From assembly GCF_964194025.1 (NCBI RefSeq), contig NC_134472.1, positions 34,162,001 through 34,226,000 of the forward strand: DNA of 64,000 bases, in the 5' to 3' direction. This stretch comes from Convolutriloba macropyga. Lineage: Eukaryota. Made by a program: the position numbers and the translations under genes. The first letter of the stretch is position 1, and each line of letters begins with the position of its first letter. This document shows, in pieces, positions 17,101-57,817 of this stretch. The notes beneath the pieces are model-generated. The model ran no database searches. It was not told the DNA's origin and saw only the letters and a program-made list of their open reading frames with translations.

Positions 17101-20100
17101 TAACACGTTGATGCAGTGTTCAGCAATACTTTCAATTGCAGTATTTTGTGAAATGTAAACTTCAAGCAAGCATTTTTCTGTTTTCCTATATTCCTCACCC
17201 GAATACTAGCATCCTCAATTTTTTGCTCGAAGAGCGTGTTTCTGATAAATCCCAGTAGAGAAAAATTGGTTGCCATCAGTTTTGTTTATCAAACAAAAAC
17301 TGATTTTTGTGGCGATAACTTGATCAGTGCGACCTCAAAATTCATATATACTTAGTAAAATAGGAGTCGTGAAATATCTTCTTGGCAGATGTTTCAATCT
17401 AATTTATTATAATTTTTGTTCGAATTCTAAAAATATAAATGCGCTGCGACAATTTGCGTTAAAACAGTAATCATTTTTTTAAATAGTTTTGTTCATTATT
17501 TATCTGCTCTAAAATTTGCTATTTTAAGATGCATTTTAAAATGTTTTAGTTATTTCAATGGTTATACAAGAACGATTTGAAAAATATACGATTTATCTGT
17601 CTTTGGACAGTCATTCACAACGAAGTTGCCTCTTTTCGGAAAAAATTAGATACATTTTTGGTCTGTTTTAACGTCTTTCAGGAAAGAGTAATTACAAAAT
17701 GATCACTTGTTTCTGTTGCTCCAATGTACGTTTTTAAAATATTAAATATTTCTCCATTCAGGGATAAAAATTAGTCCCCGGCTATTACAATGAAACCTTT
17801 AGCTTCTAAAATCTAAATCTTCCTACTAGAAGTAAATACGCAGCAATTACTTTTTCGTTTTTTTATTTGTTTATTATTTGCTATCGAGCAACCACATCTG
17901 TGCTGCAAATCATTAAAGACAGGTTTCGCCTTCCCTGTTCATACTGTTCTGGCACTGACTGTCACTCCAGACAACTTGCCTCCCCTGTTCGCATGTGGTC
18001 CAGCTCTGGATAAGTTCTACCTTGCTTTTTCGGGAATACTGCATGGTGGCTGTGTCATGTGCAATTTTGCCCTCTTCAAATGTCTCCCAGCTGTATACGC
18101 CATGACACTCAAGGTTTGTTGGACTCTTTATGGCTCTTAGGTACTTTTTTTATTGGTTAGTCCATATCATGGTCAAATTAAATTAAAGACCGAACAGAAT
18201 TTTGTAACTATTTTAATCAACAAGTCGTTTTAATGTATAATTGGGATCGAAATTGGTCATTTCACAAATCCACTATCCGCTTAGCTACTCTGCATTAAAA
18301 TTGGTTGTGTCAACACAATGGTCACTGTTGAGGTCTCCATTTAACCAAATTAAGAGCTCAACTGGTGATGGTCAAAAAAGGGACTAAAATTGCAGTCGAC
18401 GGTCAAGTTCCTTGTGAAAGCTAAGCAAAATTTTTTCATTGATCATGTAACAGATGTTCTCTTATCAATGCCATACAGTTGGTATCTCATGAATCAATCA
18501 CTCAATTTCTCAGAAAGTCTCAGAAAAGGTAACAGCTGCTCTCCCGTTGGTGTGTGACGAAGTAAGCGGTAATCCTCTCAATCCGTTTCAGCGATATCAA
18601 ATCTGTTCGGATATTACGTTTTTGCAATTAGATTTTGTCAACTGTATCATCCACTGTACTGCAGATTATTTTTGCATTACCTGATATTCAATTAGTCTCA
18701 ATAACCAATTGTTAAGCTTTGCTGACTATATAAACTTGCTTTGCTCAGAGTACTAAAATAATTCCGAACTGCAGCCATCAAACTTCGCTTGAGTTTTTCT
18801 TTAATAAGTCAAGTCATACTTTGAAATAAAACAATCCGGAGTGTCCAGCTCTTGATAAACGTCTTAGCTATAGGATAGGGCAATTAATTTCTCCGATTTG
18901 TTACTATCTTCCGAGACCTCCTCCCGAGAAACAAATTTAAGAAAAGTAATAAAATCCCCACTCGAAAACTCAATAGCACATTAAGTGAAATTATAATAGA
19001 TTTCGTTAAAGCCAGTAAGAGAAACTAACTCTGTACTTCGAACACAGCTTCTCCCCCCCCCCTTAGTAACCTAACTTTTCAGCAAAAAATTTTGGGAATA
19101 TCACTTTCATTTCTCTTTTCTTGAAGTCAAATTTAATTCAACTGTACGGTTATTAAGATGATTAACAGAAACAAATCAAAGTGACCAACCATTAACAAAA
19201 AAAGTTGTGCTTTAAGACTTAATGTATGTCAGTTTAATAGAACAACATTTGTGAGTCGCAACTGACTTTTCGTAGTTTTTCAAGACCTTTATATACTGTT
19301 AGTCACGAGGTTTTAATTGTCAAAGTTGCACCATTGATTGACTGTAGATCAGGATGTAGACAGAATATGAGCAATTTTCCACAATGTCACTTTTCAACGG
19401 TAATTTGACCTCATAGGAAGGTTACTAGCTGTGTGAAAAACATGTCAAATGTTTTTATATCAACATCTGTGTTATTGCTAATTAATAGTAAAAAAACCTG
19501 ATGCGTTACTAATGTATATTTCGTAGCAATTTGAAAAAAATTGATTTGCTGAAGCAGCTCGGGTTTCATTTCTTATATGACCTTCACTTACTTAAGTAAG
19601 TGGACATTTGTGAACAATTCAATTTGGCTCTAATTGAATGTTGAGCTCTGTTTTGCGACTTATGCTACTTGAGTCTGAAATTTTTGATTTCGAATATTAA
19701 TTTTGAAGAAGTTTTATTAGGCATTTTTCGTTATAGCGCGTATGTGTCACATTAAAATGAGAGTCCCAATCTAACCAGAAAGTCTAGTGCTCCATTAAAA
19801 AGCTGGTGGTCGACCTGTCAATCTTATTTCCTTAGTTGTTTCAATTCATGACAGGCCACAAACGTCTATCGCGGCTATTTTCCGGCAATCTGCCGGCTAT
19901 TTTTATGGTTTAATATCCTTGAAAGTGTTTTTACAATTATTTTGTACCCTCAAGCAAAGTTTTTTTGTTTGATTAGTGTAAGATTGAAATCTCTAAAAGT
20001 TGACGAAGGCCTTTTGCGAGACAAAACTACATGTTTTGGTACTGCAAACACAAACAAGAAAAATGTTACCAAACGCAGCTTCAAGTCAAACAAAATACAG

Positions 20101-23100
20101 AGAATGGTTAAGTCACTTTAGGGTTTTCAGAAACATTTAACTCCAATCTCGTAAAAGGTTTTTTCTTCGAAATTTTGCATTAAATGTTGTAGGGCTGCAA
20201 CAATTTTGAAGATGCTTAAACACTGTTTCCCGGTAAGCTTTGTTCATGTGCCTTTCTCAAAGTTGGAGTCGCGAAATTGTTTGAATCGTTAAAATGCAAT
20301 TGTCAGAAATTTGCTTTAGAAAATGGAGCCCCATGTCACATTTGTTTGGTTCGAGTGCTTAAGACAAATGGTAAAAGATAAGTTTTCGTGGTATTGCTGT
20401 GCTTCTATGTGGGAATACCGACTTCATATTTTTGAGAAGTGCGCATAAAGTTGTGCCGGTGACAGTCATGCAAAGATATTTCCAATTTAAGGCTTTGTAG
20501 TTTAAAGAACTTGAGTTTTTGCTTGAACTGATTTTCAATTATGAAAACCATTTTTTGCGCCCAGCACCCGTATGTGATAACTTCCCTTTGATATTTTGCA
20601 CCTAATTGAAATCTATGGAGCTCAACTCACAAAGGGCTCGATTCTTTTTATTTGTGATCCTCACACAAACACATATATCTCCCTTATATATGACACTTTT
20701 TTTAACCCACTATCAGATACACTAATTGAAATCCTTAACGGAGTATAGTCAGCAATACAAACCTCGGATAGAGAAAGTGTATTTAGAAAATCCTCTTTTG
20801 AATTTTTTAAACGTCTACCAACTACACTTAACACAGCTGCTTTACAATCACGAAAAGAACACGTACATGAAATCACTCGACAAGAAATAGAAAGCTTCAC
20901 TCATCTTCTTAAAATTTACATAAGTTCCGTAAAAAACGCGGATTTAAACGAAGAAGAGATTCTCGATTCTCTTACACTTCTAGCCTGGTATATACAGATT
21001 TTGGAAAAGTCTGTTAAGATATATTTTTCCTGCTACAAAACTAATAGCTGAAACGTATCCAGAATTAATAACTAAACCACCAGAAACCTTACATTATTTT
21101 TATGATCCTAACTGGTTTCCACCGAACCTTCGGAAACTATACAAAACTTTTCTATCAATCATAATAATATCGAAATAATAAACTATAACGCAGAAAACCA
21201 ACCATTTACCTGTACAGACACTCCAGAAAACAGAAATATGTCTCTTGAAGCGTCACCGATAGAAAATCTAGACACTATAGTCCACTCACAACCTACAGAT
21301 ACTCATATTAATGAAACTAAAGAAACCATTTGACTTTAACTCAACATTACTAGATGATGGAACACTCTTTTCATCACACACAGTAATTACCTTAATTGAA
21401 TTCAAAGATCATGGTCAAATTACCACTAGAAAAAAATACTACTACTGCTAATGAAACTACTAATAACACAAATATTTAGCAAGATCAACAACACAGGCAA
21501 ACTGCGTAATCGACTGAGTTGACACAAAATTCAGATCCATTAAACACAACTCTACCTACATTACCAATTGTAAACGCAGCTTTGCCACGCTTACAGTGAC
21601 CTAACTCCGTAATTTTAACACTGATCCTCTTTTTTTATATAATTCAACACAAACAACACTGACAAATAATCAAAATATTCAAATAACTCAACAACAATTA
21701 GTAAATATCGTTAGACAACTTAATTCACAAAATACGCAACAAACAACAAATGCTCCAACCCCTTATTACCTACAGGCGGCATCAACACAAACACCGTCAC
21801 CTGTAGTTTGTTAAAGTACACAAATGATGTATCCATATTTAGGAGGATCAGTGCCCATGCAACGGTCTTTAATACCATTTGATGATACTGATCCTTTTTA
21901 TACAACAGAAAATTTCTTAAATGCTATCACAGCAAATATGGTAATGACAGCAGGACCAGAGCAGATTGATTCACCGTATCATGAATCTTGGATCCTAAAA
22001 CGAATTACCATGATACAAACGGCCCTAATTGCTCCGGCACAACCATGGTACTCACATTTACCACTAAAAATAAAAAAGAACTGGCAATCGCTTTGAGTGA
22101 ATTTCAAAAGACATTCGATAATCAGCAGTCGCAAAAACAAGTGAAACTATTATTAGAAAGCATAACACGTGCTTCTGGTGTACAAATAAAAACACTAGCG
22201 CTCAGAATTGAACAATTGACGCGAAAAGCATATGTTATTAACGCTCCAGATATGCGTAATTCACAAATGAATGACGCACTCGTCAAAGCACTCGACCCAC
22301 TATTAGCCAGAATACCTCCTTAAAAGATTGCACAAATCCACTGCGTTGAAACTAGAGTTTCCTATTGCACAAATAGTAGAAAAAATATATCAAACAGATA
22401 TCACAAGAACACACATAGATAGGGACTTACTAAGCAAGTATTAAATTTAACGAATAAATTGAGTAGGGAAAGTAGCTCACGCAGTAGCTAAAACACAGTA
22501 GCTAAATGGATTTCCACCAGAAGGTAAGCTGGTAAATCCGACTCGTCCAAACCCTGTAGTAGATGGAAATAAAAAGAAATCTCCTTGTTCAAACCAAACA
22601 GAGACTACGGACTATAAGCGATCCTCCAACTGGGAACAAATCCTCACTACATGACAGTGAAGAGCAGTTGGGTACTCTAAACAGGACCGACATTACTGGC
22701 CAGCACACCCTGTAACTGGCACCCTCACTGGTTCTACAATCAGACACAACCCTCACTGACGACACTAGTCACTACTTCACAAACAAGGACTCCAGACGAC
22801 GGCCCAAGTCACAATGCCACTTCAGAGAGAACACAACTCTTTTCCCACTATTCAACGAGGACGACACATCCAGAGTATTTCTGCTACAGTTCACAAATTC
22901 GGATTGAAAACTCTTAACCCCGGGTGGATGTAGCAGTAGAAATACTGGATATATACCGTCATCCAATCAGAGACTGAGAAGACACTATTCTCTTTTATAA
23001 AGAGAGAACTCTACTAACTATAGTCCGTCTAATAGAGTAGTTGCACGATGTGCGTATCTCTGACTGGGTGTTATTCTTTATAACCACCGTTATAATTGAA

Positions 23101-23921
23101 ATATATCTTCAGTGTTCTACTGAGTCGGTTAGTCTGAGATATATAGGTAAGCCTACTTCGCGCGCAGAAATAAGTAGCCCTAGCTCTTTATACCTTAAGG
23201 CTGTAAAAGGAGCCCACAACGGTTCTGCCTTACTCGCATTCAACCTTTCTCTGGAAAATATCTTTGCTAAGTTGTTGTCTGTTGGTTTATTTGCTGTGCA
23301 ATTATGAGTTATTAGACTTTCACTTTTTTGCTTATTTGGTTTTTCAGTTTTCTTTTGTTTGCAGTTGATTTGATTTGAACCCCGCTTGTTGTTCGAGAGT
23401 AGTTTATGTACCTAATTTAATAACCTCTGGTAATTTTTAAATTTAAAAAGTCCGTTTGAGAATTTTGACCCCTTTAACAGTGCCTCTTCCCTGTTCTCAT
23501 CTAGTCCTATCTCCCCAAACTCTCATCAAGGCCAGTCCCCTTCCTAGTCTAACCCCCTTCCTCTTTTCCTATTTATAAACACCCCCCCCCCTATCCCCCA
23601 CCTGTCTCTTATTTTTATAGATCAAAAACATACAAGTACCTACTAAATAGTGAAAACGTGTTTCAGGCTCTGTCGAGTGTCTTTTCATACATTCTGCAAA
23701 TAAGTTTCAAAATGGAGCCCACAATATCGTGGCTGTCTTTGATGGGCAGTATGCTTATTGTAGCCTCAGTGATTGCCAAAGTGGTCTACCTACAGTGCAA
23801 GATTGACTCCAGCGCGGGTCAGTATGAGGGAACAGCCGAGGATGAAGGTGGAAGGGACGGCAGGAAATATAGGAACAATGCTGACATAAGCCATATAGAA
23901 TACACGTGTTTTGTAAAGTAA
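4915..23921 (+). CDS. EamA-repeat (DMT superfamily) membrane transporter, SLC35G-like; 5 exons: 4915-5101, 8484-8675, 13144-13377, 17923-18113, 23667-23921 (1059 nt, 352 aa)
   Basis: Five hydrophobic exons join in frame through GT-AG introns (phases 1,1,1,0). Motifs resemble SLC35G: GIFAAL...LLVKL; MEFADSFAI...LAWILLRE; GILLIARPKFLFG...GIVYALVSA; LKALSSVFSYILQI...SWLSLMGSMLIV. Length fits a roughly 10-TM, two-EamA protein. Confidence 0.8.
8484..8675 (+). CDS. SLC35G-like exon 2
   Basis: Part of ORF 8474..8935; weak acceptor gattgaag|, donor G|GTAAAT. Confidence 0.72.
8959..9300 (+). repeat. 81-bp tandem repeat, about 4.2 copies
   Basis: GGCCAGACCGAACAGA unit starts at 8959, 9040, 9121, 9202 and 9283. 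Confidence 0.9.
9603..9930 (+). repeat. 32-bp tandem repeat (GGTATTGGCCAGACCGAACAGACCGAAATATG), about 10 copies
   Basis: Directly visible 32-nt periodicity starting at 9603 and 9635. Confidence 0.9.
10679..12970 (+). mobile_element. Non-autonomous Helentron/DINE-1-like element with both ends present
   Basis: 5' AATAGCCGC (10682) with adjacent inverted partner GAGGCTATT; 3' GCGGCTATT (12937) followed by hairpin CTGGCA-ATC-TGTCAG and CCATGTTT; T-runs at both flanks and no TSD. Confidence 0.7.
13144..13377 (+). CDS. SLC35G-like exon 3
   Basis: Part of ORF 13137..13400 with LIARPKFLFG; acceptor ttttttgaaag|, donor G|GTCGGT. Confidence 0.82.
13672..15578 (+). mobile_element. Non-autonomous Helentron/DINE-1-like element, second structural variant
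   Basis: 5' AATAGCCAC...GCGGTTATT (13676-13707); 3' GTGGCTATT plus hairpin CGGCA-ATC-TGCCG (15546-15570); interior is reverse-complementary to 34860-35230 and 35850-36715. Confidence 0.65.
15600..16630 (+). repeat. About 1-kb diverged direct duplicate of 13960-15165, including a GGCCCTTGAAGATCG...CGATCTTCAAGGGCC hairpin
   Basis: Colinear shared strings (ggcactgcatagtt, cttgcctcagtagcaagat, ttactggatagcctctagaggcaca, gtaaaaccttaggagtttt); hairpins at about 14981-15025 and 16468-16513. Confidence 0.85.
17923..18113 (+). CDS. SLC35G-like exon 4 (GFAFPVHTVLALTV...KFYLAFSGILHGGCVMCNFALFKCLPAVYAMTLK); absent from the ORF track
   Basis: 191-nt GC-richer open segment between gacag| and AAG|GTTTGT; its phases fit both neighbouring exons. 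Confidence 0.78.
19640..20060 (+). mobile_element. 3' fragment of the Helentron-like family
   Basis: GCGGCTATT (19871) plus perfect hairpin CCGGCA-ATC-TGCCGG (19882-19896); colinear with 15350-15760. Confidence 0.7.
20640..22430 (+). mobile_element. Decayed Ty3/gypsy-type gag region in transporter intron 4
   Basis: Frameshifted ORFs 21824..22096 and 21988..22323 join to give a retrotransposon capsid pattern: QTALIAPAQPWYSHLPLKIKKNW..SEFQKTFD...IKTLALRIEQLTRKAY...ALVKAL; A/C-rich strand bias. Confidence 0.65.
22680..23234 (+). mobile_element. 3' region, PPT-like tract and 3' LTR (22929-about 23234) of an LTR retrotransposon
   Basis: Homologous to 57295-57817; CTTAACCCCGGGTGGA|TGTAGCAG start, CCAATCAG and TATAAA inside, degenerate CTGCCTTAC end. 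Confidence 0.7.
23667..23921 (+). CDS. SLC35G-like exon 5 to the TAA stop
   Basis: Part of ORF 23658..23921; acceptor gtgtttcag|GCT; two TM helices followed by a charged tail. Confidence 0.8.
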   Translation, partial: ALSSVFSYILQISFKMEPTISWLSLMGSMLIVASVIAKVVYLQCKIDSSAGQYEGTAEDEGGRDGRKYRNNADISHIEYTCFVK

Positions 23922-37800: not shown

Positions 37801-38280
37801 AACTACTTGAAACCTTCAATTCCTATCAAAACAAGCCTAAAATTAATACAATATCATAATCAAACCTCATAACCATCAAAAGTTGCAAAAAACTGCTTTT
37901 AAAAGCCGCACGTGAACAAAAAATTTCGCTCGCTTAGAGAAAATTTTTTCACACATCAATTTCTCGCTCTCTCAAAAACAGCGGTATGAACAAAAACCAC
38001 TCTCTTTTCGCTCCGCTCTCAACTTTTGCTCAGCCCCAAAATCACTCCAAATTTTTTCACGCGTTTCATTTCCCGCTTCAAAAATCACTCCAATAAAATT
38101 GATTAAAAAAAGGACTTCTCCAATACTCCTCTTCGAGTCGTAAAAAAAAAGACAGCGCCCCAATACAATTCAAATTCTTTGAATTGTAAAAAAGACAGAG
38201 CACCAATACAATCCAATTCTTGGATTGTAAAAAAACCATAATGTCCCCAATAATAGCCGCTATCGCTTCGCGGCTATTAA
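34836..38280 (-). mobile_element. Composite Helentron/DINE-1-like element (about 3.45 kb) with both ends intact
   Basis: 5' stem AATAGCCGC-N9-GCGGCTATT (38252-38278); 3' subTIR (34860-34868) plus perfect hairpin CCGGCA-GAT-TGCCGG (34843-34857); A-rich flanks and no TSD. Confidence 0.72.
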
Positions 38281-38341
38281 AAAGACGATAGCTTCAAAAT
38301 CTCTTTCAGTTCTACTTTAAAATTCAAATTTAGAAAAGTAT

Positions 38342-38632
38342 TTACTCAAAAGTCATGTTGAATTGAGAATCTTTGGTCATAGTAGTAGTAGATGTTGAAA
38401 AAGACCTCTGGTCACTGTTATTAGATACTTTGTTCAAACTCTTCTTGACATCGCTCTTTTTGCTTTTGTTAGCAGTTGTTGTTGTTGCTGTTACATGCGT
38501 CGAATTTAGAGGCAAGTCTGAATGTGATTGGACAATTGCAGCTGAAGAGTTTGGGGTGGGGGTTGTAGGCATGGCTGTAGGAGGAGTATGTTTCTTGCAT
38601 TTAACTCGTCTGTTCTGAAACCAGATCTTCAC
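38342..38632 (-). CDS. Gsx: Gsx exon 5: homeodomain residues 45-60 ([16 protein letters not shown]) plus Thr/Ser/Lys-rich tail to the stop
   Basis: Acceptor ttttgttccag|GTG; lies within ORF 38342..38650. Confidence 0.9.
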   Translation of the reverse strand: MKIWFQNRRVKCKKHTPPTAMPTTPTPNSSAAIVQSHSDLPLNSTHVTATTTTANKSKKSDVKKSLNKVSNNSDQRSFSTSTTTMTKDSQFNMTFE

Positions 38633-41201
38633 CTGGAACAAAACAGGCAAATCTATGTTGTCGCAATCCGAAAAAATGTATAGACTTAAAGCACCATATT
38701 AGGCTATAGGTTTTATAATGGGTACAAAACATTCTATAATTTTCTGAAAGCATCCTGGCAACTTACTGTTTATGATCAGTTCTTTCAAAAATCAGTTTCA
38801 TTCAGAATACTAAGTGTTATTTTACAATACAGTTGTTTGAAGTTAAGGACTAAGGAAGTGTGCTTTTTAATTGAGAGACTGAGCGCACCTGTTTTTCTGT
38901 AAGTTTTAGTCTAGTAGCGATCTCTATCCTTCTGATTCTGGTGAGGTAGTTGTTAGAGTCAAATTCCCTCTCCAGCTGCATGAGTTGAACACTGCTGAAT
39001 GCTGTTCTGCTCCTCCTGGAAGCACCTCCGCCCCCTCCTACTCCTACCCCACCCGGAACACCACCCACTGCTGCTAGTCCAGCTGCTGCGGCTGCTGCCG
39101 CTGCCAGTGCCTCCCCAGCTGTACCACTTAACATGCAGTCCAGTCCTAAAAACCTAAATTTATTCTCCGGGAGCTCTTTTCCTTTCAACACGTTATATGA
39201 ACATCTAAAAGTTGTTTTTAAAAGCGGTTGCTCCACATGAATTGTTGTGATAAGCTCAGAACATGGCTTAATTCCAGCAAAGTCATTTTTGACATCGAAG
39301 CAGCACTTTTTAGCATAAAAACAGCTTGCTTCCGTTTTCATGAAACACTCCAGCAGTTCTTGGGATTAAGCTGAGTTTTGTAGCTTTAGAGGAATACTAC
39401 TCAATTATTATAAATATCAGCTCTGAAAACCGGGCATTTTGATAATTTTGGCATCTTGAACTCAAAAAATTTATCTGCACTAGACAAATTGTTTCGCTCG
39501 TTATCAAAAATTTTTCAAAAGTTTGCCGATCAAAAGTTTGCTGATTCATACATTAAACAATTAGGTCATATTGTCTTCAAGAATTGACCTCGCCATTGTC
39601 TGGCATTCCCATATCATTCAAATTGGGTTTGAATTTATCCCCCATGTACGACCCAAAAAGGTCTGATGAGAGGTCAATGTCTGGACTAAAAACTACGCAT
39701 GGGTATAACACTAACCTGCGGATCCGAGCACTTGAACTCCCCACAACACTTGATGCAACAAGTCTCGATTCCCTACCAGATATCTGGCCACATCATCAGT
39801 GCTGATGGCTCCAGCATTGCCACAATTGTTCACACCTGTCGTTAATGGCACCAATGGTTGAGAAGGTGCATCCGTAGTCACTGTTAGCGGGCTCTAAGCA
39901 GGTTACGTGGGTAGGAAATTAAAAAGGCTAGAATCGGGATTGGTTTTGGTTTCTCGCCGGTAGAACATGACAATCTATCTGATTGTTCAAAACTTCCAGA
40001 TATTAACTCTAATGGATTATGCCGCCACCAATTGGTTAACACAAACCATTATTAGCCGAAAATATGTTTGTTTGATTGTGAAGGCAAAGATTTTGTTTAG
40101 AGGTAAGGAAAACAGAAATCAAATAATTTCTCCCATTTTACTTCACTAGTACCAAACAAGATCGGCGACAACTTCAAAACAAATTTTTTTCTGTCGTTTC
40201 TCGATTTATTATGAGATAATATTTTTCAATGACCTATGATGACATTTTTTTATAACTTAATGTGTCTCGTTTTGTATATGAATTGAGACTTCCCGATACT
40301 TGATGACTTAGTTCGTATGATTCAATATTTCTCGATGCAGAGATTTATGACTTATTTAACCTAGCTAATATTTACCATGTCAATGGGGTGGCTGCCCAGA
40401 AGTGAGCCTAGAATTCCTGATGTAACTGGCATGGTAGATAGAATGTTTCCTGCCTCATTCGCCTCACCAATCGTATCAGCAATTGCGCCATGCTCACCTT
40501 CACTCCTTCTTTTTGTGGCTTTGGTTTTGTCTAGAATTGGACTGGAGGTGACCGCATCGGATTCTGGAAGAATCGTTCAATTTCCAATTCAACATAATTA
40601 GCTAAGCATTTTATTTCCATGAAAAAAAACAACAAAAAACCCCAAGGAAATAAACCCTCAACTGACTGTTAAAGAACTGCGCATTTAGGGCCTCGTAGGC
40701 CATTCCCTAGTGCGAATTATTATGAAATTATCACAACTGAACAAAATATCACGACCAAAGTTAAATGTTAACATGGGTGTTTATTTCTGTGGGGATTGAT
40801 TTCTCTGAGAGTCTACAGCAATATACAGAGTCCGGGTTTTGAAAATTACGACTTTTCAAATGCAATCCTTTTCAGAAGATAATGATGGAATTATTTTTTC
40901 ACATCTACTTATGAAGTAGCCACCGAACAGGTACTTAAAACTGACGTTTTTTCCACTTACTTTTTGTTCTGTTTTTTCCTGACTTTTTGGCTGGACTTGT
41001 CTGGGATTTCACTGCAGGGACATCATCTCTGGAAAGACGACCCGATACTTGTCTCCCCAGAATGCTCGAAGTAAAATCGGGTGGCGTGTGAATCAATTGA
41101 TTGTTCACACACCTGGATAAAAGGCTATCAATAGAAAAATCGAGACCTGACAGCACGTCTGCACACGGAAGCAAACTGTTGTTTACATTATTTTGACTCA
41201 T
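38342..41201 (-). CDS. Gsx: Gsx/ind-family ParaHox homeodomain transcription factor, 5 coding exons: 41201-40961, 40563-40376, 39893-39716, 39145-38889, 38632-38342 (1155 nt, 384 aa)
   Basis: The spliced homeodomain [44 protein letters not shown]|[16 protein letters not shown] has the Gsx-typical EREFxSNxYL, RRIEIAT, EKQVKIW and RRVKxKK. It is about 44/60 identical to GSX1 as I recall it (manual comparison). An eh1-like motif FSIDSLL lies near the N-terminus. All four introns are GT-AG with compatible phases (1,0,1,0) and give one open frame. Confidence 0.88.
38889..39145 (-). CDS. Gsx: Gsx exon 4: poly-Ala/Gly linker and homeodomain residues 1-44 (39020-38889)
   Basis: Acceptor gtttttag|GA, donor CAG|GTGCGC; lies within ORF 38850..39341. 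Confidence 0.9.
39716..39893 (-). CDS. Gsx: Gsx exon 3 ([10 protein letters not shown]...[15 protein letters not shown])
   Basis: Acceptor cctgcttag|, donor CAG|GTTAGT, 178 nt open; the phase-1 end matches the exon 4 acceptor. Confidence 0.7.
40376..40563 (-). CDS. Gsx: Gsx exon 2 ([26 protein letters not shown]...GSHPIDM)
   Basis: Acceptor ttcttccag|, donor ATG|GTAAAT, 188 nt open in the phase-1 frame, GC content above the flanking introns. Confidence 0.7.
40961..41201 (-). CDS. Gsx: Gsx exon 1 (MSQNNV...[11 protein letters not shown]...KNRTK), contains the eh1-like motif
   Basis: ATG at 41201; strong donor A|GTAAGT at 40960; FSIDSLL matches the eh1 consensus FSIxxIL and the Gsx N-terminal SFxVDSLI. 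Confidence 0.75.
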
Positions 41202-41209
41202 CACTAATT

Positions 41210-41980
41210 AGTTATTGATGTTAAATTTAATTGGTCGATTTTAATTGAAAAATGAAGGTAGTGTTTAGAAGGATTTGATTATCTGGACAGTTTTTAATAG
41301 ACGTTGGTTTTTGATTATGGCAATTAGATGGCTCGCAGAATGTTAGTAAATTCGAAACAAAAATTGCAATTTTTTGCAACCTCAGATGGCCACAACTGCG
41401 AGAAATTAATAGAAGAAAAACAGAATAGTAGATCAAAAAATCCGACAGATTTACGTTGGGCTTATATGGTAAAAATGATTTGGGTAATCAATTGGTGATT
41501 TTATAGATGATTAAACAGCAATTGGAAGAATGCAATTGGGGCAAATGAGAATAAGGGCTGCTTACCTGGTCAGATGGGTTGTGATTGGAAACACTTTGCA
41601 TGAGTTGAGAGAGATCGATTACCTAAACTATCCCGGGCTATTGTGGATAGATGAGGGTTTTGAGTTGGATATAGCGTGGAGTGAAATGAAAGGACGATTA
41701 GTTATAGATGATTAGATGTGAATAGATTCTGGAAGGAGAGAGAAGAATTGTGTTGGAAAGAGGGAAAAGTTAGATTGGTGGTGGATTGTATTTATTTGTT
41801 TATTAAGGGCGATTAAGGAGAAGTCAAGGCCCATTACCCTTGATGAATATTGGCTTTTAATGGCTAATTGAGAGCGAGAAGGAGTAAGGGGGGATGGTGC
41901 CAAATGGTGCCTAAAAGTCAAAGCTGCTCATTCTATCAGCATTATAACTCATAATTTGGGGTTCTCCGGTGAACACCGTG
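41210..41980 (-). promoter_or_regulatory. Putative Gsx 5' UTR and proximal regulatory region
   Basis: Unique sequence directly upstream of the ATG with many TAAT/ATTA cores (e.g. 41205, 41228, 41242, 41314, 41323, 41697, 41711, 41802, 41812, 41833, 41858, 41865, 41941). The transcription start cannot be determined. Confidence 0.45.
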
Positions 41981-45879: not shown

Positions 45880-46500
45880 ACTTTTGTTTTTTTCGAAAAC
45901 AAATATTTTCGAAGTCATGAAAGCCATTAGCTACAAAAGAGATAACTAAATAGATTCGTTTATTTGCCGAAAGGAAGAGACGAAAGTTGAGACCTGCAAT
46001 TATTCAGAATATGTCTTACGTGTACAAAAAGAACATCAGATTTAGACAGAAATCAAAAATTTGTTGATTTTTTTTGCAAAAAAAACCGGGTCGAAGCCAC
46101 TAAAACTAACGAATTCTTTCAAAATAATTAATAGGCTTTGCACATTTACACTTTACCTCATAATTCATGTTGTCATATGTGACCTGTATTTAACAAGAAC
46201 AGCAAACAAATAGACAAAAATTACAAGAAAGCAAAGTTAAAATTTGTTGTCTTTGAAAACAAATATTTTGTTTTGACAGAGGGGTGTCGAATTCGTGAAA
46301 ACGATAATATAAGACTTTGAAGATTTTCATATGATCAGATTTGCCTAAATTTGAATGCCAATATTGTAACATGTGAACTGTAAATATTGTGATAATGACA
46401 AAAAAAAAGATTTAAAAAACGTAAAAAGGGGGCCAATGCCTAACATAAAGAAAAAAAATAAATTCTAGAAGTATCAAATCCACAAAACTATAGTCATAGT
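45880..46500. repeat. Non-coding 3' region of Pao copy A, repeated at 51320-52070
   Basis: Shared ttcgaaaacaaa...cattagctacaaaa, tacgtgtacaaaaagaac and catgttgtcatatgtgacctgtatttaa. Confidence 0.85.
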
Positions 46501-49500
46501 CTGCTAATTGTTGGTAGAAACTCTTTCACTAAGCGTCACCAAATATGGTTTAGCAGCTTCTGCGTGTTCCTCCATGTCTTCAAACTTGAAGGTTGCCGGC
46601 CAGTCTACAAATTTTCCTGGTGGCAAACTATTGAAGGGACGTCGGGTAAGAAAGTGGTTTGGAGTCAAGGGTTTCTCGTTGTCAAGATGATCAGCAGCGT
46701 TTGCCAGCGGCCAGGAATTGAGGTTTGATTTTGGTTCCAGCGTTATTGTAAAGAAAGTGTCAAAAGACAGTCTTCTCGATCCTAGAATGAGGAGGAGCGT
46801 TCTTTTGGCGCTCTGATTCAAACGCCCCCAGACAACGCCAAATTGAGAGCCGTATGGAGGATCGGATTGCTACGTTTTACTGGCTACTGCTAAAAATATG
46901 TAGATTCCTTTTTTTCTAACTCTTCAAAATTTTTATTCACTTTTTCAAAAGCGCCACTAAAGGTTTTTTCGTTTTCGCTGTAAAGAAGTTGGGGCTGGCT
47001 CCCACGACTGCAAAATCTTCTGAGGGCAGTGAGCAACGTATCTGTGTTTAGGTCTGAACACGTTTTCACTTGAACTGCATGATTCACCATGCTTGTAAGT
47101 ATCAGACCATGGTTTTTTTTGTTTGATTTTTTTTAGTATCTTTGATGCAAAAGGGTCCAAAGAAATCTGCACCAGAATTAGCCAAAGGGAACTATATTTC
47201 TGCTGTTGGAAAGCGAAAACTGGGTAAAGGAGCTATAAATGGCAAATGTTTTTTGTATTAAAGCGTCGCTTTAAGAAAAACTAAAATCGTATGCCTGCTA
47301 ATGCTTTGCGAAGGCCAATCACATGGAAACGTTGTTGAATGAAAGCTATTGTTGGTTTTGTGAACCGTTGAATACATATTTGATACGCATGTTCCGAGTA
47401 CTAACGAAAAATTTTGTCCATGGCGTGCAAAATTACAAGACGTTTTTCCAAATGCAATTGTGTTTGTGCATACTGCAGTCGACTAGAGTTTCTGAGCAAT
47501 CCGTTGTCATCATCTTAATTTTCAATTGGAATTCAGTTTAATTCGACGCTGTAAGGACTGAACGATTGAGTTGGAGAGGTTGTCCTGCAATATTTCCAGG
47601 AGATAGGTTCAAGATAATTGAATTTCATCAGTTGTATAGCGGCCATTATTCGTTCGCAATTTCTTTGCTCGATAAATTAGTTTAAACACGTTGCAATCGT
47701 CAGAAGAAGTTTGTTCCATGTGGAGAATTTGTTCAATTTGACTATAGGTTTAAGCGTCTTGGAACATCGCTTGACTGCAGCACATGTTGTTTGTTGTTTG
47801 TTTTTATCATTCCACGACAACTCGCTTTTGCAAAGGAGTTGGGCTGGTGCTATCGATTTTAGTCGTCTCAAGACCGCAAGTTCCGTGACCAGAGGGGTTG
47901 GGATAATTTAAGATGTAATGCCATTGCTTGAATGAAGAAGTTCTTTAAATTTCTTGCAATCTGGCTGGAGAAAAACCTTTCTGCTTCATATTAAAGCTAT
48001 CCTGCAAAACTACTTGACTGCCTATAACGGCGGCCTCTAATTCCTTTTGTGGCACTCCTATTTCTTTAATGAGAGCGATTTTGTTTAAACGGAATTGTTG
48101 CTGACTGTTTTGGCTATTAGTGGTACGGAGTTAGGCAATGGCTGCCTTAGCTGACATTGAGGCATCCACAAAAACGTGAAGTCCGCTGAATGGGTTTCTG
48201 CTCGAATTTTGATCAGTTCTTGGTATTTGAATTCCCGCCATGGCAAAACTGCTTTTTATAACTTTGTGGAGGGCATTGTGTAGTTCCAGCGGTATCAATT
48301 TTTTCCATTTTTTCAAGCTTTCATATCTGTTGCAGAATTTTTTTGATCCTGATTGTAAGAGGAGACAAGAAGCAGAGGGGATCAAAGATTTAGGATAACA
48401 AACTGAACAATTTCTTTTGTGTGTACACTGCTGCATATTGAGAAAACTGTTGCATGCGGAAAATGACGAATTGGTCAGTTGTTACGTTCCACTTTTGACC
48501 GAGGACTCTCGTCATCTTTTTTGTTTCGTCTTTGTCATCAGCTGAGATTTCGGCCAGAACTTCTGGTGTGTTTCAAACAAACTTTGTCAAATTTAAGCCG
48601 CCATTTTTTAGGCAATCTTTTGTGTGTGAAATGGATTTGCGGGCTTCCGCCATTGTTGGCACCGACTGGATGTAGTCATCCATATAACAGTGGTATTTAA
48701 TTTCGCTCAAAGATGCTGGGATCTGAATTTTGCTGGAATTTTCCGCACATTTATGAGAGACATTATTTGAGCAAAAAATGGTCAACATGTAGCACCAAAG
48801 ATGAATTTGGTAGACGACTGCAACTGTCGGATGATGTTGTCTATCATCCAAAGAAAACGATGAGTAGACTGATCTTCTTTTCTGACGGCATTTAGCATAG
48901 ACATCCCTTCAATGTCTGAGAGGGCAGCAACCGGTTGTTCTCTGATTCTCAACCAAAACTCCAACTTAGTAATTCGGCGAATCGCGACCAGTTAGAAGAT
49001 TTGAGTTCAGTGAATCATCCCGAAAAATTGATGCTGTGTTGGCAAATCTTCCCACTTTTCAGGGTTTATTTGTAATAGTGAATCTATGATAAGATGAGTA
49101 CCTTTTTGACTAAAAAGTTTGTGCTTGTAATTTGACTGGCTTGACAAATTTTGATACCAATCTGTTTGGAGTGTCTGTTGTACTTTCATTGAGACTTGGA
49201 TCTTTTGGTGCTTGTTTTTTTAGATATTTTATTTGACTGATTGCTGAGAAAAATTTGTTCTGGGGTTTCGTTACAGGATTCCTTGGAACGCCATTTTCAA
49301 ATCTTGCACCGTTAGGACAGATTGAGTTTTCCATTGTTTGCACTGCTAATTGGTGTAGTGAGCTGTCTTCATTTTGATCGGGTGATGTACTTTCAGCTTC
49401 ATTTTTCCCGAGTCGTTGAACCAATTCGTCCAATGGTTCATCTTCAATGTCTTACCGGCATACATGGTAAACGGACGGCTGTTGCTGCGGCTTGATTTCG

Positions 49501-51300
49501 TTCATTGTTTTAAGAGAAACCTCGGACTCTCCAGCGAGAGTCCAACCAAGCTTAGTTTTGACCCCTATTGACGATTTTTGCTATGTTGGGTTACATCGAC
49601 TGTGTATGTGAAGTCAAATGTATTGACACCAAGGACGGCTCCTATATCACCGTTGGCTATGTCAGTGAAATGGAAAGGTGACTAAATTCCTTAAAGATGT
49701 GGCATAATTGATCAATTTCAAGAATGTTAGCGAGTGAAACGTTGAGACGTGGCGTGCTGTAGGTTCTTGCAAAACTGAATTGTTGGTTGACTTTGCTGTC
49801 ATTGTTTCACTTACTTTTGACAGTGGCATCTCAAGTTCATTGTTGAAATACTGCAGAGTTGTTGTTGCTTGCGTTTTGCAGAGAAGCTCAAAAAAGCTAG
49901 TAGCTTTATCCGCATGAAGGTGAATTGGGTTCGGGGATCAATCAAGGTGTAGGTATCCAACACTAAACATCCGCTTACAAACGAAATTGGAAGTATTTCT
50001 AGTTGTTCATACCATTCAAAAGGAGGAATTGTATTTCGGTTGATAATGATTATTTGGGTCGGATTCGAAGAATTCAAGTTGGCACGTTGAATATTTTGTT
50101 GATATGTTTTTTGTTTACCAGAAAACAACCAGCCGTATCTTTTTTGCTCGATTTATTTTCTGTTGACATTTTCAGTACTTTTGGTTTGATTTTGTTGTTG
50201 AAAAGATGATTGGGTTTGCTGGCTCGTTAGATTTCATGTCAACTGATTTGGATTGCTTGTTGAGAAAGCAGCGGTGAGCCACCTAAATTGTTTTGAAGGA
50301 TCATGCAAAGTTGTGGGGTGAAATTTTTACATGTTTACAATTGTTTTTTTGGACGGACAGGACTCATTAACATAATTGTTCCTTAGACAGCTCGAACAAA
50401 GTTTGATCTCGCTCACATTTTTGTACTGTGTTACGGTGACTGTTTTTGATATTCAAGGCATGTGACTTCGTTTGCATTTCTGGCAAGACTTGTGTGAATA
50501 ATCAGCATCTTTACGCGGCAGACAGGACGAATGATCATGGGAATTTGCGGGGCGATTTGAGTGCCATTCATTTTGTTTCCAATTGTTTGGCGATTTAATA
50601 GAAAATTGATAAATAGACTCTCAGCATTTTTCCCCTAATATCAGTGTTGTGTTAACTCTGCCAATATTTTTTGCGGGTTTATCTGAATGTGTTCAGACTA
50701 CTGAACGGCTTATGAACATTTTCGCTGTTGATTTTGTCGTAAACTTGTGCTTGTACTTCAAGCCATTTTTGGAATTTATAGAGTGTTGGTTGATTAACAA
50801 TTGATGTGATTGTAAACTCTGTCCATTTTATCAGAATATTATGTTGATCTTTTGCGTTTGCATTTTCATCAATGTCCAGTTTTAATTTTGTTTCAACTGA
50901 TTTGAATTGCTTGTTGAGAAAGCAGCGGTCGGCCGCTTAAATTATTTTGAAGTATCATGCAACTTTTTGTCGTGAAGTTCTTAAAAAGTTTGGCATCGTT
51001 TTGGATGGACAGGACTGAAGGACCAGTTTGTTACTTCTTATGCAAATCCCGCAAGATTTGTTTAAATAATCAGCATCTTTCAGCGGCAGAAATGGCGGTT
51101 GACCATGTTGCTTTGTAGAGCGGGTTGGGTGCAATGAATTTTTTTCCCCAATTTTTTGGTGATTCAATAGAAAAGTGGATCATTGCATCACTGCTCCAAA
51201 TATCAGTGTTGTTGTTAATTCTGTTAATGTTATTTTGTTTTTTCCGAATGTGTTCTGACTGCTAAAGGGCTTATGATCATTTTCACTGTTGATTTTGTTA
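46500..51300 (-). mobile_element. Decayed BEL/Pao LTR retrotransposon, copy A (gag-protease-RT-RNaseH-integrase; extra gag piece at about 50880-51300)
   Basis: Fragments DTYTLIDPRTQFTF (protease), ALSDIEGM and CYMDDY (RT), LHVFVDASMSA (Pao RNaseH), DLNTDTLLTALRRFCSRG and LNSWPL...PLTPNHFL (integrase); many stops and frameshifts. Confidence 0.9.
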
Positions 51301-52069: not shown

Positions 52070-55000
52070 GTCTTCTACGTGTTGGCAGATACTCTTTCAC
52101 CAAGGGTTCCTGGTAGCAACGTTAGTCACTGGACTGGAATTGAGGATTGATTATGTTTCCAGCTTGATTGTAAAGAAAATTTCAAGAGACAGTCTCCTCA
52201 ATCGATCATAGAATGAGGAGGTGCGTTTTTTCGGCGCTCTGGATCACACTTTTCCAGACACCGCCGAACTGAGGGCCGTATGGGGGTCGAATTTCCACGT
52301 TGTATTAGGTACTGCTAGAAGTTTGAAGATTCTTTCAATGTCTAAGGGTTTAACAGTTTTCTACAGTTCTTCAGGAGTGCCAAAAATGGTTTTCCGTTGT
52401 CGCTGTAAGGAAATTTGGGGCTGGTGCTGGCGTTGACGACTGCAAAATCTTCGGAAATCCTTAAGGAACGTATCTGTGTTTAGGTCTGGACACGTTTCTA
52501 AGTGAAATGCACGCGTCACCATGCATGTAAATTTTAGGCCATGGTGTTATTCTACAAGTTTTTTGGAATCTTTGATCCAGAGGGGTCCAAAGGAATCTAC
52601 ACCAGAATTAGCAAAATAGAAATATGCATCTGCTGTTAGAAAACGAAAACTGGGTAATGGTGCCATAATTGGTCAAATGTATTCGTGGCAAACCGTCTAC
52701 TTAAGAAATAATAAAATCGTTTGCTTGCTAATGCTTTGCGAAGGCCAATCACATGGGAACGTTGTTGATTGAAGTCTTTTGTTGGTTCTGCTTACTGGTG
52801 AATACTTATTTGATGGGCGCGCTCCGAGTACAAACGAAATATTTTGTCTTTTGCCTGCAAAATGCTTGAACATTTTTCCAACTCCAGTTGTGTTGGTGCC
52901 TAATGCAATCGACTAGAAGATCTGAGCAATCCGTTGTGATCCAACAATGGGTTCAGGCATCGTATTTTTCACGTGGAATCTAGTAAAGATTGAACCACGG
53001 ATTGGGAAAAAAAATGTCCTGCAATAGTTTTGGGAGATAATTTATGGTTGAATGTCTTCATTTGTATACGGGTCATCGTTTGTTCGTTTTTTCTTTGAGC
53101 GATAAATTAGGTTGAAGACCGTTGCAAATGTCAGAAGACCTGTTCGATCTGGAAAGTTTGATCGAATCAACTACAGGATTAAGCTTTTTGAACTTCTCGT
53201 GACTATAGCACATGTTGCTGGTTTGTTTATCACATTCCACGCTGACTCAATTTTGTAAATGAGTGTGGCTAGTTTTAACCATTTTTGCTGAATTTCACTC
53301 GTCTCAACACCGCTAGTTCCCTAATCAGTGGAATTGAGATAAGTTGAGATGAAAGGCCATTGCTTGGGTGAACAAGTTCTTTGAATTTCTTGGAATCTAT
53401 TTGAACAGAATACTTTTTTCCTTTTTAAGGCTACCCAGTCCAAAACTACATGACTGTCGGACCAGAGAAAAATTTGGTTGAATGTCAGTGTCATTTCTCT
53501 TTAGCTCGGTTGGAGAAGCTGCGAGCCTGTAACGGCGACAGCTAGATACATTTTTTGCACGCTTATCTGTTTTTTGGGAGTAAATTTGCCATTTCCCATG
53601 AGAAAGCGCGCTCGTTGCTGACTTTTTTGGCTATTAGTGGTACGTAGGTAAGCAACGGTTGCCATAGCTGACATTGAGGAATCCCCAAAAATGTGATATT
53701 GGGTAGTTGGGTTTATGCTCTATTGATGAATAGTTCTCGGTATTTGAATTTCTGCCATGGCAAGGTAGCTGTTTAGAATAGAACTTTTTTGAGGGCGATT
53801 TGTAGTTCCAGCGGTTTCAATTCATTTCGCTGTTTTCAAGTTTTGAATCTGTTGCAGAGTTAAATTGATCCTAATTGTCAGATGTCACAACAGGCCGAAA
53901 GGATCAAGGGTTGAAGATACCAAACAGAAAAATTTCCTTTCTGTGTACAGTGCTGCATCTTTAGGAAATTGTTGTATGGGGAAAATGACAAAATTGGTGG
54001 ACGTCGTTATGAGGACCCTCATTATATCTTTTGTTTTGTCTTTTTCATCAGCTGAGATTTCAATCAGAACCTTCGGTGTGTTTGAAATAATCTTTTTCAG
54101 AATTAGACTTGAAGCCGCCAATTTTCAAGTAACCTTTTGTCTATGAAATTTTTGGCTTCCACTATTGTTGGCTGTGTCTGGATGTAGTCATCAATACAAA
54201 AGCGGTGCTTAGTGGCATTCAAGGCTGGTGCAATCGAAATTTTTCTGGACTGTTCCGCATATTTTTAGAGGACATAAATTGCGCAAAATGGTGAACATGT
54301 AGCACCGAGATTATTCTGTTAGACTCTCTGAATCTAAACTAAAACTCCACCTTAGTAATTTGGCAAATCGGGACCAATTAGAAGATTTGAGTTCAGTAAT
54401 TCACCCCGACAAAATGATGCTGCGTTGGCAACTCTTCCCATTTTTCACAATTTCTCTGGAATAGTGACTCTATGATGAAGTGAGTACCATTTCGACTCTA
54501 GAGGCTGCGCTTGCAATATGACTGGCTTGACAAATTTCGGGAACAGTTAGAAGATTTGATTTCAGTGATTCACACCAAATCTTTGATGTTGCGTGTGCAA
54601 CACTTCTTGTTTTAGGGGTTTGTTTGGAATATTGACTGTATGATGAGTTGAGTACCATATTGCTCTTGGGGTGGTGCCTGCATTTCGACTGGCTCGACAA
54701 AATTCTAATCCAAGTCTGTTTGGAATGTCTGGTTGTTCAGAAGTCGTTTTTGTAGATTTTTTAGCTGGCTGACTGCTGAGAATTAGTTGTGCTGAAGGTA
54801 CTTTGAAGATTTTCAAGTAGGTTCAGTTTCTTGTCTTTCACCGTTAATACTGATTGCATTTTCTATTGTTTGCACTACTATTTTTAATGAGGAGCTGTTT
54901 TCATTTTGTTCGAGAATGTACCTTCTTTTTTCCAAAGTTGTTGATTCAATTCCTTTGTTGGTTCTTCTTCAATGTCTTTCCGGCAGACAGATTTACCAGA

Positions 55001-56430
55001 CGGTTGTTGCTGTGGCTTGATATCTTTTTTTGCGAAACCTCGTACTCTCCAACAAGATTTCAACCAAGCTTTGTTTTGTTACCAAATTGACGATTTTTGT
55101 TACTTTGTATTACTTCGAATGGATATGTCAAGGCAAATGTATTGACACCAAGGAGGGCACCAATGCACCGCTGGCTATGTCAGAGAAATAAATGTGATTA
55201 AAACACTTGAAGGTGATGCATAACTGATTGAGTTCAAGAATGCTAGCGGGTGTTACGTTGAGTCATGGCGTTCTTGCAAAATTGAGTTGTTGGTTGATTT
55301 GTCAAACAGACACTATTTCATTTAATTTTGACAGTAACTTGTCATGTTCAGTGTTGAGATACTGCAGAGTGGTTGATGCTTGTGTTTCGCAGTGAAGCTC
55401 AAGAAAGCTAGTAGCTTTATCCGCATGAAGGTGAACTGGGTTCCGGGATCGATCAAGGCGTAGGTATCTAACACTATACTTCCGCTTGCAAACGAAACTG
55501 GAAATATTTGTAGTTGTTCATACCATTCAAAGAGAAGAATTGTATTTCGGTTGATACTGAATATTTGGGTCGGGTTCGAAGAATTCAAGTGGGCACGTTG
55601 AACATTTTGTTGTTGTGATTTTTGTTTAACAGAAAACAACTAACCGTATCTTTTTGCTCGCTCTATTTTCTGTTGACAGTTTCAGTACTTTTGGTTAGAT
55701 TTTGTTGTTGAAAAGATAACTCGGTTTGCTGGCTCAATAGATTTTACTCCAATTGATTTGGATTGCTGGTTGAGAAAGCAGCGGTGGGCCGACTAAATTG
55801 TTTTGAAGGATCATGCAAAGTTGTGTGGTGAAATTTTTGCATGTTTACCATGGTTTTTTTGGACGGACAGGACTCAATAACATAATTGTTTCTTAGACAG
55901 CTCGATTAAAGTTTGATCTTGCTCACATTTTTTTACTGTGTTAAGGTGACAAATTTTGATATTTAGGGGATGTAGCTAGTATGTGTCTTCGTTTGCATTT
56001 CTCGCAAGACTTGTGTGAATGATCAGCATCTTTACGTGGCAGAAAGGACGATTGATCATGGGAGATTGCGGGGCGATTTGAGTTCAATTCATTTTCTTTT
56101 CAATTGTTTGGCGATTTAATAGAAAAAATTGATAAATAGATTCTCAGCATTTTTGCTCCTAATATCAGAGTGTTGTTAATTCTGCTAATGTTTTTTTCGG
56201 ATTTATATGAATGTTTTCAGACTTCTAAACGGCTTATGAACATTTTCTCTGTTGATTTTGTCGTAAACTTGGGCTTGTACTTCAAGCCATTTTTGGAATT
56301 TATTGAGTGTTGGTTGATTAACAATTGATGTATACTCTGTCCATTTTATCAGTATATTATGTTGATTTTTTTCTTTTGCATTTTTCATCAATGTCCAGCT
56401 TTGCTATTCAGCTTTGTAATCTTTATTCTG
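52070..56430 (-). mobile_element. Decayed BEL/Pao LTR retrotransposon, copy B
   Basis: Colinear with copy A; DTYALIDPGTQFTF and KWTEY...PTLNKFQKWLEVQAQ (gag); part of RT is deleted near 54310. Confidence 0.88.
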
Positions 56431-57817
56431 ACGGCGGGCTTCCAATTGGTTGATGAAAGCATCCGCAACAGTGCTAGGGTTCCCAAAGTGATTCATAGGC
56501 TCCTTCCCAACTCAATACCCACACAGCTCTTCCTGGGCTGAGGAAATCGCTGCGGAACAATCGGATCGATCAACACCCAAAACAGTGGTCCCCAACTGGG
56601 CCTACTCAGGCCGAATTCATGTCCCACAACCAGGTAGCCAGCCACTGACATACCCACCGCCACCAAAGATGCCCACACCATTGTCATTTGTAGCTACCAT
56701 CCCACCATCTCACAGGTGTGTGCCGACAATCCCTCCAATTCGAGCTCAACCGACCTTTCTCCAACCCCAGCCCCCTCCTCACGATCGGCCAACATCTACC
56801 GATAATTATCCCTGCATGGATCTTTCCCCATGGAGAAGCCCCAGACCTATCAAATTTGAGATCTATCCCGTTCGTTCTTTCCCATTCCAGGGCTCACAGT
56901 CACCTGCACCACATATTGCCAGTCCTCCTAGAGGCACACAGTCCTCATCTTCAAAGGGTCGAGTAAATCCGTTCGCCCGTACACAAAGAGTGCTACACAG
57001 AGCACAGGGGTCGAATTTCAAGTTCCACCAATTCTCCAATCCTCTAGGCATCAACACGGATCACGATGTTTATGTCCCCGAGAGGATTACCTTTATTTCA
57101 ACACCACCACATCGCACGTTGAAACCAACCGCAAGCTCATGCTCCTTGGGACATCTGGAATATGAGTATGTTGAGGCACGATGAGATGAGGACCTCCTAC
57201 TAGAGTGCCTCCACTTCCCGTACAATCCCCGTCTTCCCCGCCTCCAACTGGAACAAATCCCAGCTACAAGACAGGATCAGATAGTTGAGTACTCTTGACA
57301 GGACAGAGGTTACGGGCCAGCACACCCTGTAAATGGCGCCTTTACTGACTCTACAACTGAAGTGGACAACTTAATGACGACACTAGTCGTCACTACTCAC
57401 AGGGACACTAGACGACAGCACAAGTCACAACTCCACTTCAACGACAACACGTTTCTTCACTCACTTCTACAGCGAGGATCACTCGTCCCACGTATTTCGG
57501 CTACAACTCACAGCCCCGGATTTGACACTCTTAACCCCGGATGGATGTAGCAGTAGAAATACTGGAGTTGCTCCTCCAACCAATCAGAGACTGAGAGGAG
57601 TGTATTCAGTCTATAAGAGTAGTTGTACGATGTGTATACCTCTGACTCCGACGTTAACTCTCTTATACATCGTTATAATTGATGTATATCTTCAGTATTT
57701 TGCAGAGTTTGTTAGTCTGAGAGAAATAGGTAAGCCTATTTTGGGCTCAAAAATAATTAGCGCTAGCTCTTTATACCTTATGGCTGTAACGGGAGCCCAC
57801 CTTGGGTCTGCCGTAGA
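56430..57817 (+). mobile_element. 3' part of an LTR retrotransposon (probably Ty3/gypsy): Pro-rich pol tail, PPT-like tract and 3' LTR (57546-about 57817)
   Basis: GC-richer segment with Pro/Ser-rich ORF 56585..57184; 57295-57817 is homologous to 22680-23234; GGATGGA|TGTAGCAG LTR start. Confidence 0.65.

Follow-up and report, generated by a model that had tools for sequence, protein, structure and literature searches.

A predicted single-copy Gsx gene, unlinked to other ParaHox genes, in the acoel Convolutriloba macropyga

The acoel Convolutriloba macropyga carries, at about 34.20 Mb on chromosome 5, a single-copy homeobox gene that we identify with high confidence as its orthologue of Gsx (genomic screened homeobox), a ParaHox gene, unlinked here to the other ParaHox genes. 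The stretch of DNA analysed, referred to below as the window, comprises 64,000 nucleotides of that chromosome (NC_134472.1, positions 34,162,001 to 34,226,000); coordinates given without a chromosome are those of the window. The gene occupies 38342-41201 on the minus strand, with its homeobox split over two exons. The assembly from which the window is taken, txConMacr16.3, contains 1,175,981,408 bases in 4694 scaffolds, of which chromosome 5 (C5, the other chromosomes being denoted likewise) makes up 77,656,271 bases (PMC13650328).

The predicted gene model consists of five exons totalling 1155 nt and encoding 384 amino acids, all on the minus strand, with every junction GT-AG and in frame. 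Exons 4 and 5 bear the homeobox, and upstream of it three further open stretches with consensus splice sites continue the frame up to an ATG at 41201. Exon 1 (40961..41201, 241 nt) starts at this ATG and ends at the phase 1 donor AAAAA/gtaagt, its basis being the open frame and the splice consensus; at residues 22-28 (41118..41138) it would encode the motif FSIDSLL, a diverged version of MSRSF(L/F)VDSLI that resembles the eh1 motif. Exon 2 (40376..40563, 188 nt) is delimited by the acceptor ttcttccag/AA, the sole acceptor that preserves the frame, and the donor ATG/gtaaat, and exon 3 (39716..39893, 178 nt), placed by frame and splice consensus, by the acceptor cttag/AGC and the phase 1 donor GCAG/gttagt; both are without homology support. 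Exon 4 (38889..39145, 257 nt) encodes an Ala/Gly-rich linker and homeodomain residues 1-44 (39020-38889) up to the phase 0 donor CAG/gtgcgc. Intron 4 (38633..38888, 256 nt), with its GT..AG boundaries and polypyrimidine tract, separates homeodomain codons 44 and 45, and exon 5 (38342..38632, 291 nt including the TAA stop) supplies homeodomain residues 45-60 (38632-38585) and a Thr/Ser/Pro-rich C-terminal tail. The predicted protein accordingly runs from the diverged Gsx N-terminal motif through the linker and a 60-residue homeodomain to the Ser/Thr/Pro-rich tail, and the homeodomain retains R5, I47, W48, F49, Q50, N51 and R53.

Four DNA runs, derived from two specimens that belong to one culture, contain the locus and resolve two haplotypes. 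Five full-depth, difference-free unitigs, namely 40821-41316 around exon 1, 40354-40554 over exon 2, 39702-39993 around exon 3, 38887-39153 around exon 4 and 38280-38676 around exon 5, account for all predicted exons minus 9 bases of exon 2, and the heterozygous bubbles sit in the predicted introns. The listed haplotype differences amount to one single-nucleotide polymorphism (SNP) in 1155 exon bases, a heterozygous site at 40555 in exon 2 that changes Ala84 to Thr, against 34 SNPs and 11 insertions or deletions (indels) in 1705 intron bases (Fisher p = 1.7e-9), with 11 of these SNPs and 2 of the indels in intron 4. According to the unitig layout, 12 more differences beyond those listed should fall at about 39154-39276, within intron 3. 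The concentration of the listed differences in the introns lends support to the exon boundaries and also to purifying selection acting on the coding sequence.

Several lines of evidence place the homeodomain in the Gsx family. The Pfam homeodomain profile (PF00046) matches the exon 4 frame with E 5.4e-11 and, over profile positions 43-57, exon 5 with E 6.8e-4. Compared with all solved structures, residues 1-44 match human GSX2 (8eml) at 57 bits and Scr, Pdx1, Ubx and Gbx1 at 42 bits or less; the only structure above GSX2 is an engineered tandem Engrailed that is counted twice, leaving GSX2 as the top single-domain match in the PDB. Exon 5 alone does not discriminate in this comparison, helix 3 being generic. 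Searched exhaustively with HMMER, 1.84 billion representative proteins yielded 3887 matches, and among the top 150, in which the pattern was read, nearly all single-homeodomain proteins carry a Gsx pattern beginning RTAF(T/S)S.QLLELEREF..N.YL(S/T), including the named entries 'Gsx protein [Hofstenia miamia]', 'homeobox protein GSH' and 'GS homeobox 1 [Jaculus jaculus]'. In a maximum-likelihood tree of 69 complete homeodomains, C. macropyga's own homeoboxes included (IQ-TREE, LG+G4, 1000 ultrafast bootstraps), the window homeodomain falls within a clade of 33 Gsx sequences to which the three named Gsx references also belong (ultrafast bootstrap support, UFBoot, 93), and outside it lie PDX1, Cdx and three acoel Hox genes, one each of anterior, central and posterior type. 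The spliced homeodomain is identical to the three named references at 43-45 of 60 residues, as against 29 of 60 for PDX1, and no other C. macropyga homeodomain matches any of the three as well. Its helix 3 bears the signature RRVK common to all 32 Gsx-clade references, whereas the Mox and Hox sequences seen here read RRMK. A pattern search for the N-terminal motif found F.[VI]DSL[IL] at residues 5-11 in six Gsx-clade references and FTIQALL at residues 7-13 in Hofstenia Gsx; the C. macropyga protein would possess the motif too, yet in a diverged and displaced form that carries less weight than the homeodomain. An earlier note on this DNA, made from its letters alone, had called the homeobox Gsx-like and proposed a homeodomain phylogeny; the structure match, the protein matches and the spliced identity bear the identification out, as does the tree, which groups the domain with Gsx and not with Mox, Hox or NK.

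The intron that divides the homeodomain is in phase 0 (CAG/gtgcgc...ccag/GTGAAG). Nine Gsx-like reading frames on contigs of other animals have a match that ends right after EKQ and is followed by a valine, which is how a GT donor would be translated. One contig (L080) reads GAGAAACAA/gtaagg, then a 122-nt intron and ag/GTGAAAATCTGG, equal in position and phase to intron 4, and another (L079) has the donor CAG/gtagga at the identical codon. An intron at 44/45 is a feature that Gsx genes share, common in the family and not defining it. The earlier note had spoken of a divergent, intron-split Gsx; the intron is no sign of divergence, given that Gsx genes of unrelated animals are interrupted at the same place and in the same phase.

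Within the window no second homeobox accompanies Gsx. A genome-wide scan with PF00046 yielded 80 matches, a single one of which lies in the window (C5:34200883-34201017, that is 38883-39017), and the next-closest match on chromosome 5, an NK2-like box, is 1.7 Mb away. A homeodomain profile applied to the entire six-frame translation of the window, in 3500 pieces, scored only the two Gsx exons (E 2.9e-19 and 1.1e-7; the rest E > 1), and within the window PDX1 and Hofstenia Gsx homeodomain queries likewise matched no more than these exons. In intact ParaHox clusters, such as those of amphioxus and vertebrates, Pdx/Xlox is the next gene 3' of Gsx and is followed by Cdx. Chordates with such a cluster have Gsx adjoining Pdx and Cdx, whereas the C. 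macropyga gene is solitary: Xlox and Cdx do not adjoin it on one chromosome. Cdx lies at C13:26447899-26448066, a locus that matches CDX1 and CDX2 at 95.6 bits and other families at 56 bits or below, and a genome search with a verified PDX1 homeodomain found no Xlox/Pdx locus on any scaffold, placed or unplaced, and none between Gsx and its 3' neighbour. These results agree with the earlier description of Gsx as the only homeobox in 64 kb and of the cluster as broken, and they supply the genome search for Pdx and Cdx that had been suggested alongside it. The PDX1 reference was the second homeodomain of a 276-residue MetaClust protein (P0006) from among the HMMER matches, which reads through two homeoboxes, one of Gsx type and one identical to the PDX1 structure 2h1k; this protein probably stems from a gene model that fuses neighbouring genes of a vertebrate's clustered ParaHox locus.

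All matches of the PDX1 query are catalogued homeobox loci, led by the central Hox gene on C9. The latter is 75% identical to PDX1 and was considered as a candidate Xlox; it was rejected, with Ftz, Scr and Antp scoring 87-92 bits and Pdx1 75 bits. The Hox genes themselves reside on three chromosomes (anterior C11:52451660, central C9:6918957, posterior C1:26281392), such that no two of Gsx, Cdx and the Hox genes share a chromosome. An Evx-like box (C9:27010716) shares its chromosome with the central Hox gene at a distance of 20 Mb; the Hox and Evx family names, except that of the central Hox, derive from reading of the sequences and from tree position. On chromosome 13 the second exon of a homeobox at 25485206, about 0.96 Mb from Cdx at 26447899, and a further box at 3004361 have family signatures that we read as Ro-like and Mnx-like, respectively, and the three together may preserve a vestige of HOXL linkage. 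Duplicate homeodomain stretches also occur elsewhere in the genome, as a tandem pair 3.4 kb apart (C13:15368464/C13:15371834), as a pair 1.5 Mb apart that differs at one residue (C5:76067977/C5:77589957), and as three pairs of a chromosome and a small unplaced scaffold (C6:47098768/C3741:57956, C7:21421430/C639:41590, C13:3004361/C2797:20563). All pairs but the second are identical, and those that involve an unplaced scaffold have the appearance of haplotigs retained in the assembly.

A number of points weigh against a solitary, functional Gsx gene and give room to other explanations. The homeodomain could belong to another HOXL family, either Mox or a diverged anterior Hox, and be merely Gsx-like. 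The references of the tree were collected by similarity to the query, which leaves the outgroup families thinly sampled and Mox without a full-length representative, and the addition of 44-residue fragments gives a Gsx-clade support of 81 and brings P0018, a Mox-like fragment, next to the Gsx sequences of acoels, a placement that we read as a missing-data effect. Compared exon by exon, moreover, with Hofstenia Gsx as the query, the anterior Hox gene (70.5 bits) comes out ahead of the exon 4 piece of Gsx (59.5 bits), and only the spliced comparison reverses this ranking. Yet the window homeodomain is identical to the Mox-like fragment at 27 of 44 residues and, by hand count, to the nearest Gsx references at 34 of 44, in keeping with its identity over the whole domain; helix 3 reads RRVK and not RRMK, the Gsx N-terminal motif is present, and a distinct anterior Hox gene is found on C11. 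We judge a misassigned family to be very improbable. Hardly more credible is a decaying or silent Gsx relic in place of a working gene. The exon junctions are predictions, most critically those of exons 2 and 3, for which homologues are wanting, the protein is long (384 residues compared with 148 in Hofstenia Gsx) and contains low-complexity stretches, and its function and expression are inferred. Against a relic stand five exons that are all open and flanked by consensus splice sites, intact DNA-contacting residues, and exons that are identical between haplotypes bar one substitution next to introns that differ at 34 listed SNPs and 11 indels.

The remaining alternative concerns linkage, and supposes that Cdx or Xlox truly lies near Gsx and that the cluster seems broken only through a scaffolding error or an assembly gap. 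The absence of Xlox does depend on the assembly, which contains 6,645 gaps, reaches a metazoan BUSCO completeness of 69%, saw 510 breaks and 798 joins introduced by curation and is 12% unplaced. The window itself contains not a single N, though, and a 3.7-kb long-read contig spans the gene without difference; Cdx is located 26 Mb inside another, Hi-C-supported chromosome, no Xlox-like homeobox turns up on any placed or unplaced scaffold, and Xlox is missing from the published surveys of acoels and Xenoturbella as well. Of the three alternatives this assembly artefact strikes us as the least likely, and a single-copy Gsx gene without ParaHox neighbours is the interpretation that we retain.

On the 3' side the nearest neighbour of the gene is encoded on the plus strand and hence convergent with Gsx, its last open frame ending at 23921, 14.4 kb from the Gsx stop. 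Weak Pfam matches (EamA, E 0.055; Nuc_sug_transp, E 0.014) and language-model neighbours at 0.91-0.93 mark it as a gene of the SLC35 / drug-metabolite-transporter type. The distance, the orientation and, short of subfamily G, the SLC35 type of the SLC35G-like transporter described previously are upheld. Inside the span of its candidate exons (8399-23921), at about 8700-10050, lies a long run of degenerate tandem units that is open in several frames (GQTEQT..., RPNRPKYGYWPDRTD...). On the 5' side one dispersed repeat family has left two neighbouring, decayed copies, 75-81% identical, at about 46500-50900 and about 52100-56500; they contain traces of a Pao peptidase and a reverse transcriptase and represent a Pao-like retroelement family, of which at least 25 copies were scored genome-wide among roughly 7000 first-look candidates. 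Beyond these retroelement traces, open reading frames (ORFs) of at least 90 amino acids in the 23-kb 5' flank contain no Pfam domain. The transposon debris that had been called the sole content of this flank is real for the two Pao-like copies, the rest being covered by the Pfam scan of these ORFs. Two further repeats adjoin or interrupt the gene. A short and extremely abundant one just beyond the Gsx stop (38200-38306) reaches a summed contig depth of 37,000-409,000, compared with about 3-60 over the gene, and shows many 34-87-base joints that go back on themselves in the manner of a tandem array; the other (40661-40767), within intron 1, has a depth of about 2,500-3,500.

Gsx was first reported in three acoels and in Xenoturbella by Brauchle et al. 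in 2018 (PMC6125248), and a survey published in GBE in 2026 lists Gsx in six acoels and Xlox in no xenacoelomorph and describes the acoel Hox genes as atomised (PMC13125763). Xenoturbella bocki possesses Gsx and Cdx and is devoid of Xlox; its Cdx and one Gsx lie on one scaffold, an arrangement interpreted as a cluster retained in part (Schiffer et al. 2024, PMC11521371). The ParaHox complement of C. macropyga is of the same kind (Gsx and Cdx, no Xlox), but Gsx and Cdx are separated on chromosomes 5 and 13. In the genus Convolutriloba, Cdx alone had been found previously: Hejnol and Martindale (2009) applied ELEKEF/WFQNRR and Gsx N-terminal primers to genomic DNA of C. longifissura, sequenced 325 clones without recovering Gsx, and called whole-genome sequencing necessary (PMC2761877). 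The C. macropyga gene reads QLEREF in place of ELEKEF, has an intron between the primer sites and FSIDSLL where FLVDSL would be expected; if the C. longifissura gene is similar, these primer mismatches and the intron may explain why the polymerase chain reaction (PCR) missed it. The two text supplementary files of the 2026 survey do not name C. macropyga (PMC13125763). The possibility, raised in the earlier note, of a gene unreported in its lineage holds at the level of the genus Convolutriloba (PMC2761877), and is too broad for acoels, whose Gsx is already published (PMC6125248, PMC13125763). The present gene seems to be the first Gsx described from Convolutriloba.

Among known Gsx proteins, that of Hofstenia miamia (QFQ66881.1, P0048) is identical to the C. 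macropyga homeodomain at 43 of 60 residues, and the two share RRSRTAF at the start of the domain and LKLTEKQ before the intron site, both of which most other Gsx proteins lack. Each also has an eh1-like N-terminal motif, FTIQALL in Hofstenia and FSIDSLL in C. macropyga. The Hofstenia protein has only 148 residues, however, and the long linker and tail of the 384-residue C. macropyga model are without counterpart in it. The homeodomain of GS homeobox 1 is identical at 44 of 60 residues. Vertebrate GSX1 and GSX2 and insect ind have the RRVK signature in helix 3 and the N-terminal F.VDSL motif in common with the C. macropyga protein, but their motif begins at residue 5 and not at residue 22. By analogy with Gsx proteins elsewhere, the protein would act as a sequence-specific transcription factor that binds TAAT-core sites via helix 3, its eh1-like motif near the N-terminus may serve to bring in a co-repressor of the Groucho type, and a role in anterior neural patterning is probable.

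The solitary position of Gsx is the normal state of the lineage, in which Xlox was lost in Xenacoelomorpha and Hox and ParaHox genes are scattered in acoels, and is no peculiarity of this locus. The presence of Gsx, the loss of Xlox and the scattered Hox genes are already published for acoels, and nothing here is new in kind; modestly new are the Gsx gene for the genus and the mapping of Gsx and Cdx to different chromosomes. We lean towards a somewhat larger interpretation, whereby acoel ParaHox genes are seen here for the first time at chromosome scale, the full separation of Gsx from Cdx dates the final break-up of the cluster to after the split between Xenoturbella and the acoelomorphs, in parallel with the atomisation of the Hox genes, and the gene is the Convolutriloba Gsx that degenerate PCR missed in 2009. 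The locus fills one cell, Convolutriloba Gsx, in the table of xenacoelomorph Hox-like genes, and while it confirms the published picture and leaves it unchanged, its chromosome coordinates help to date the loss of ParaHox linkage.

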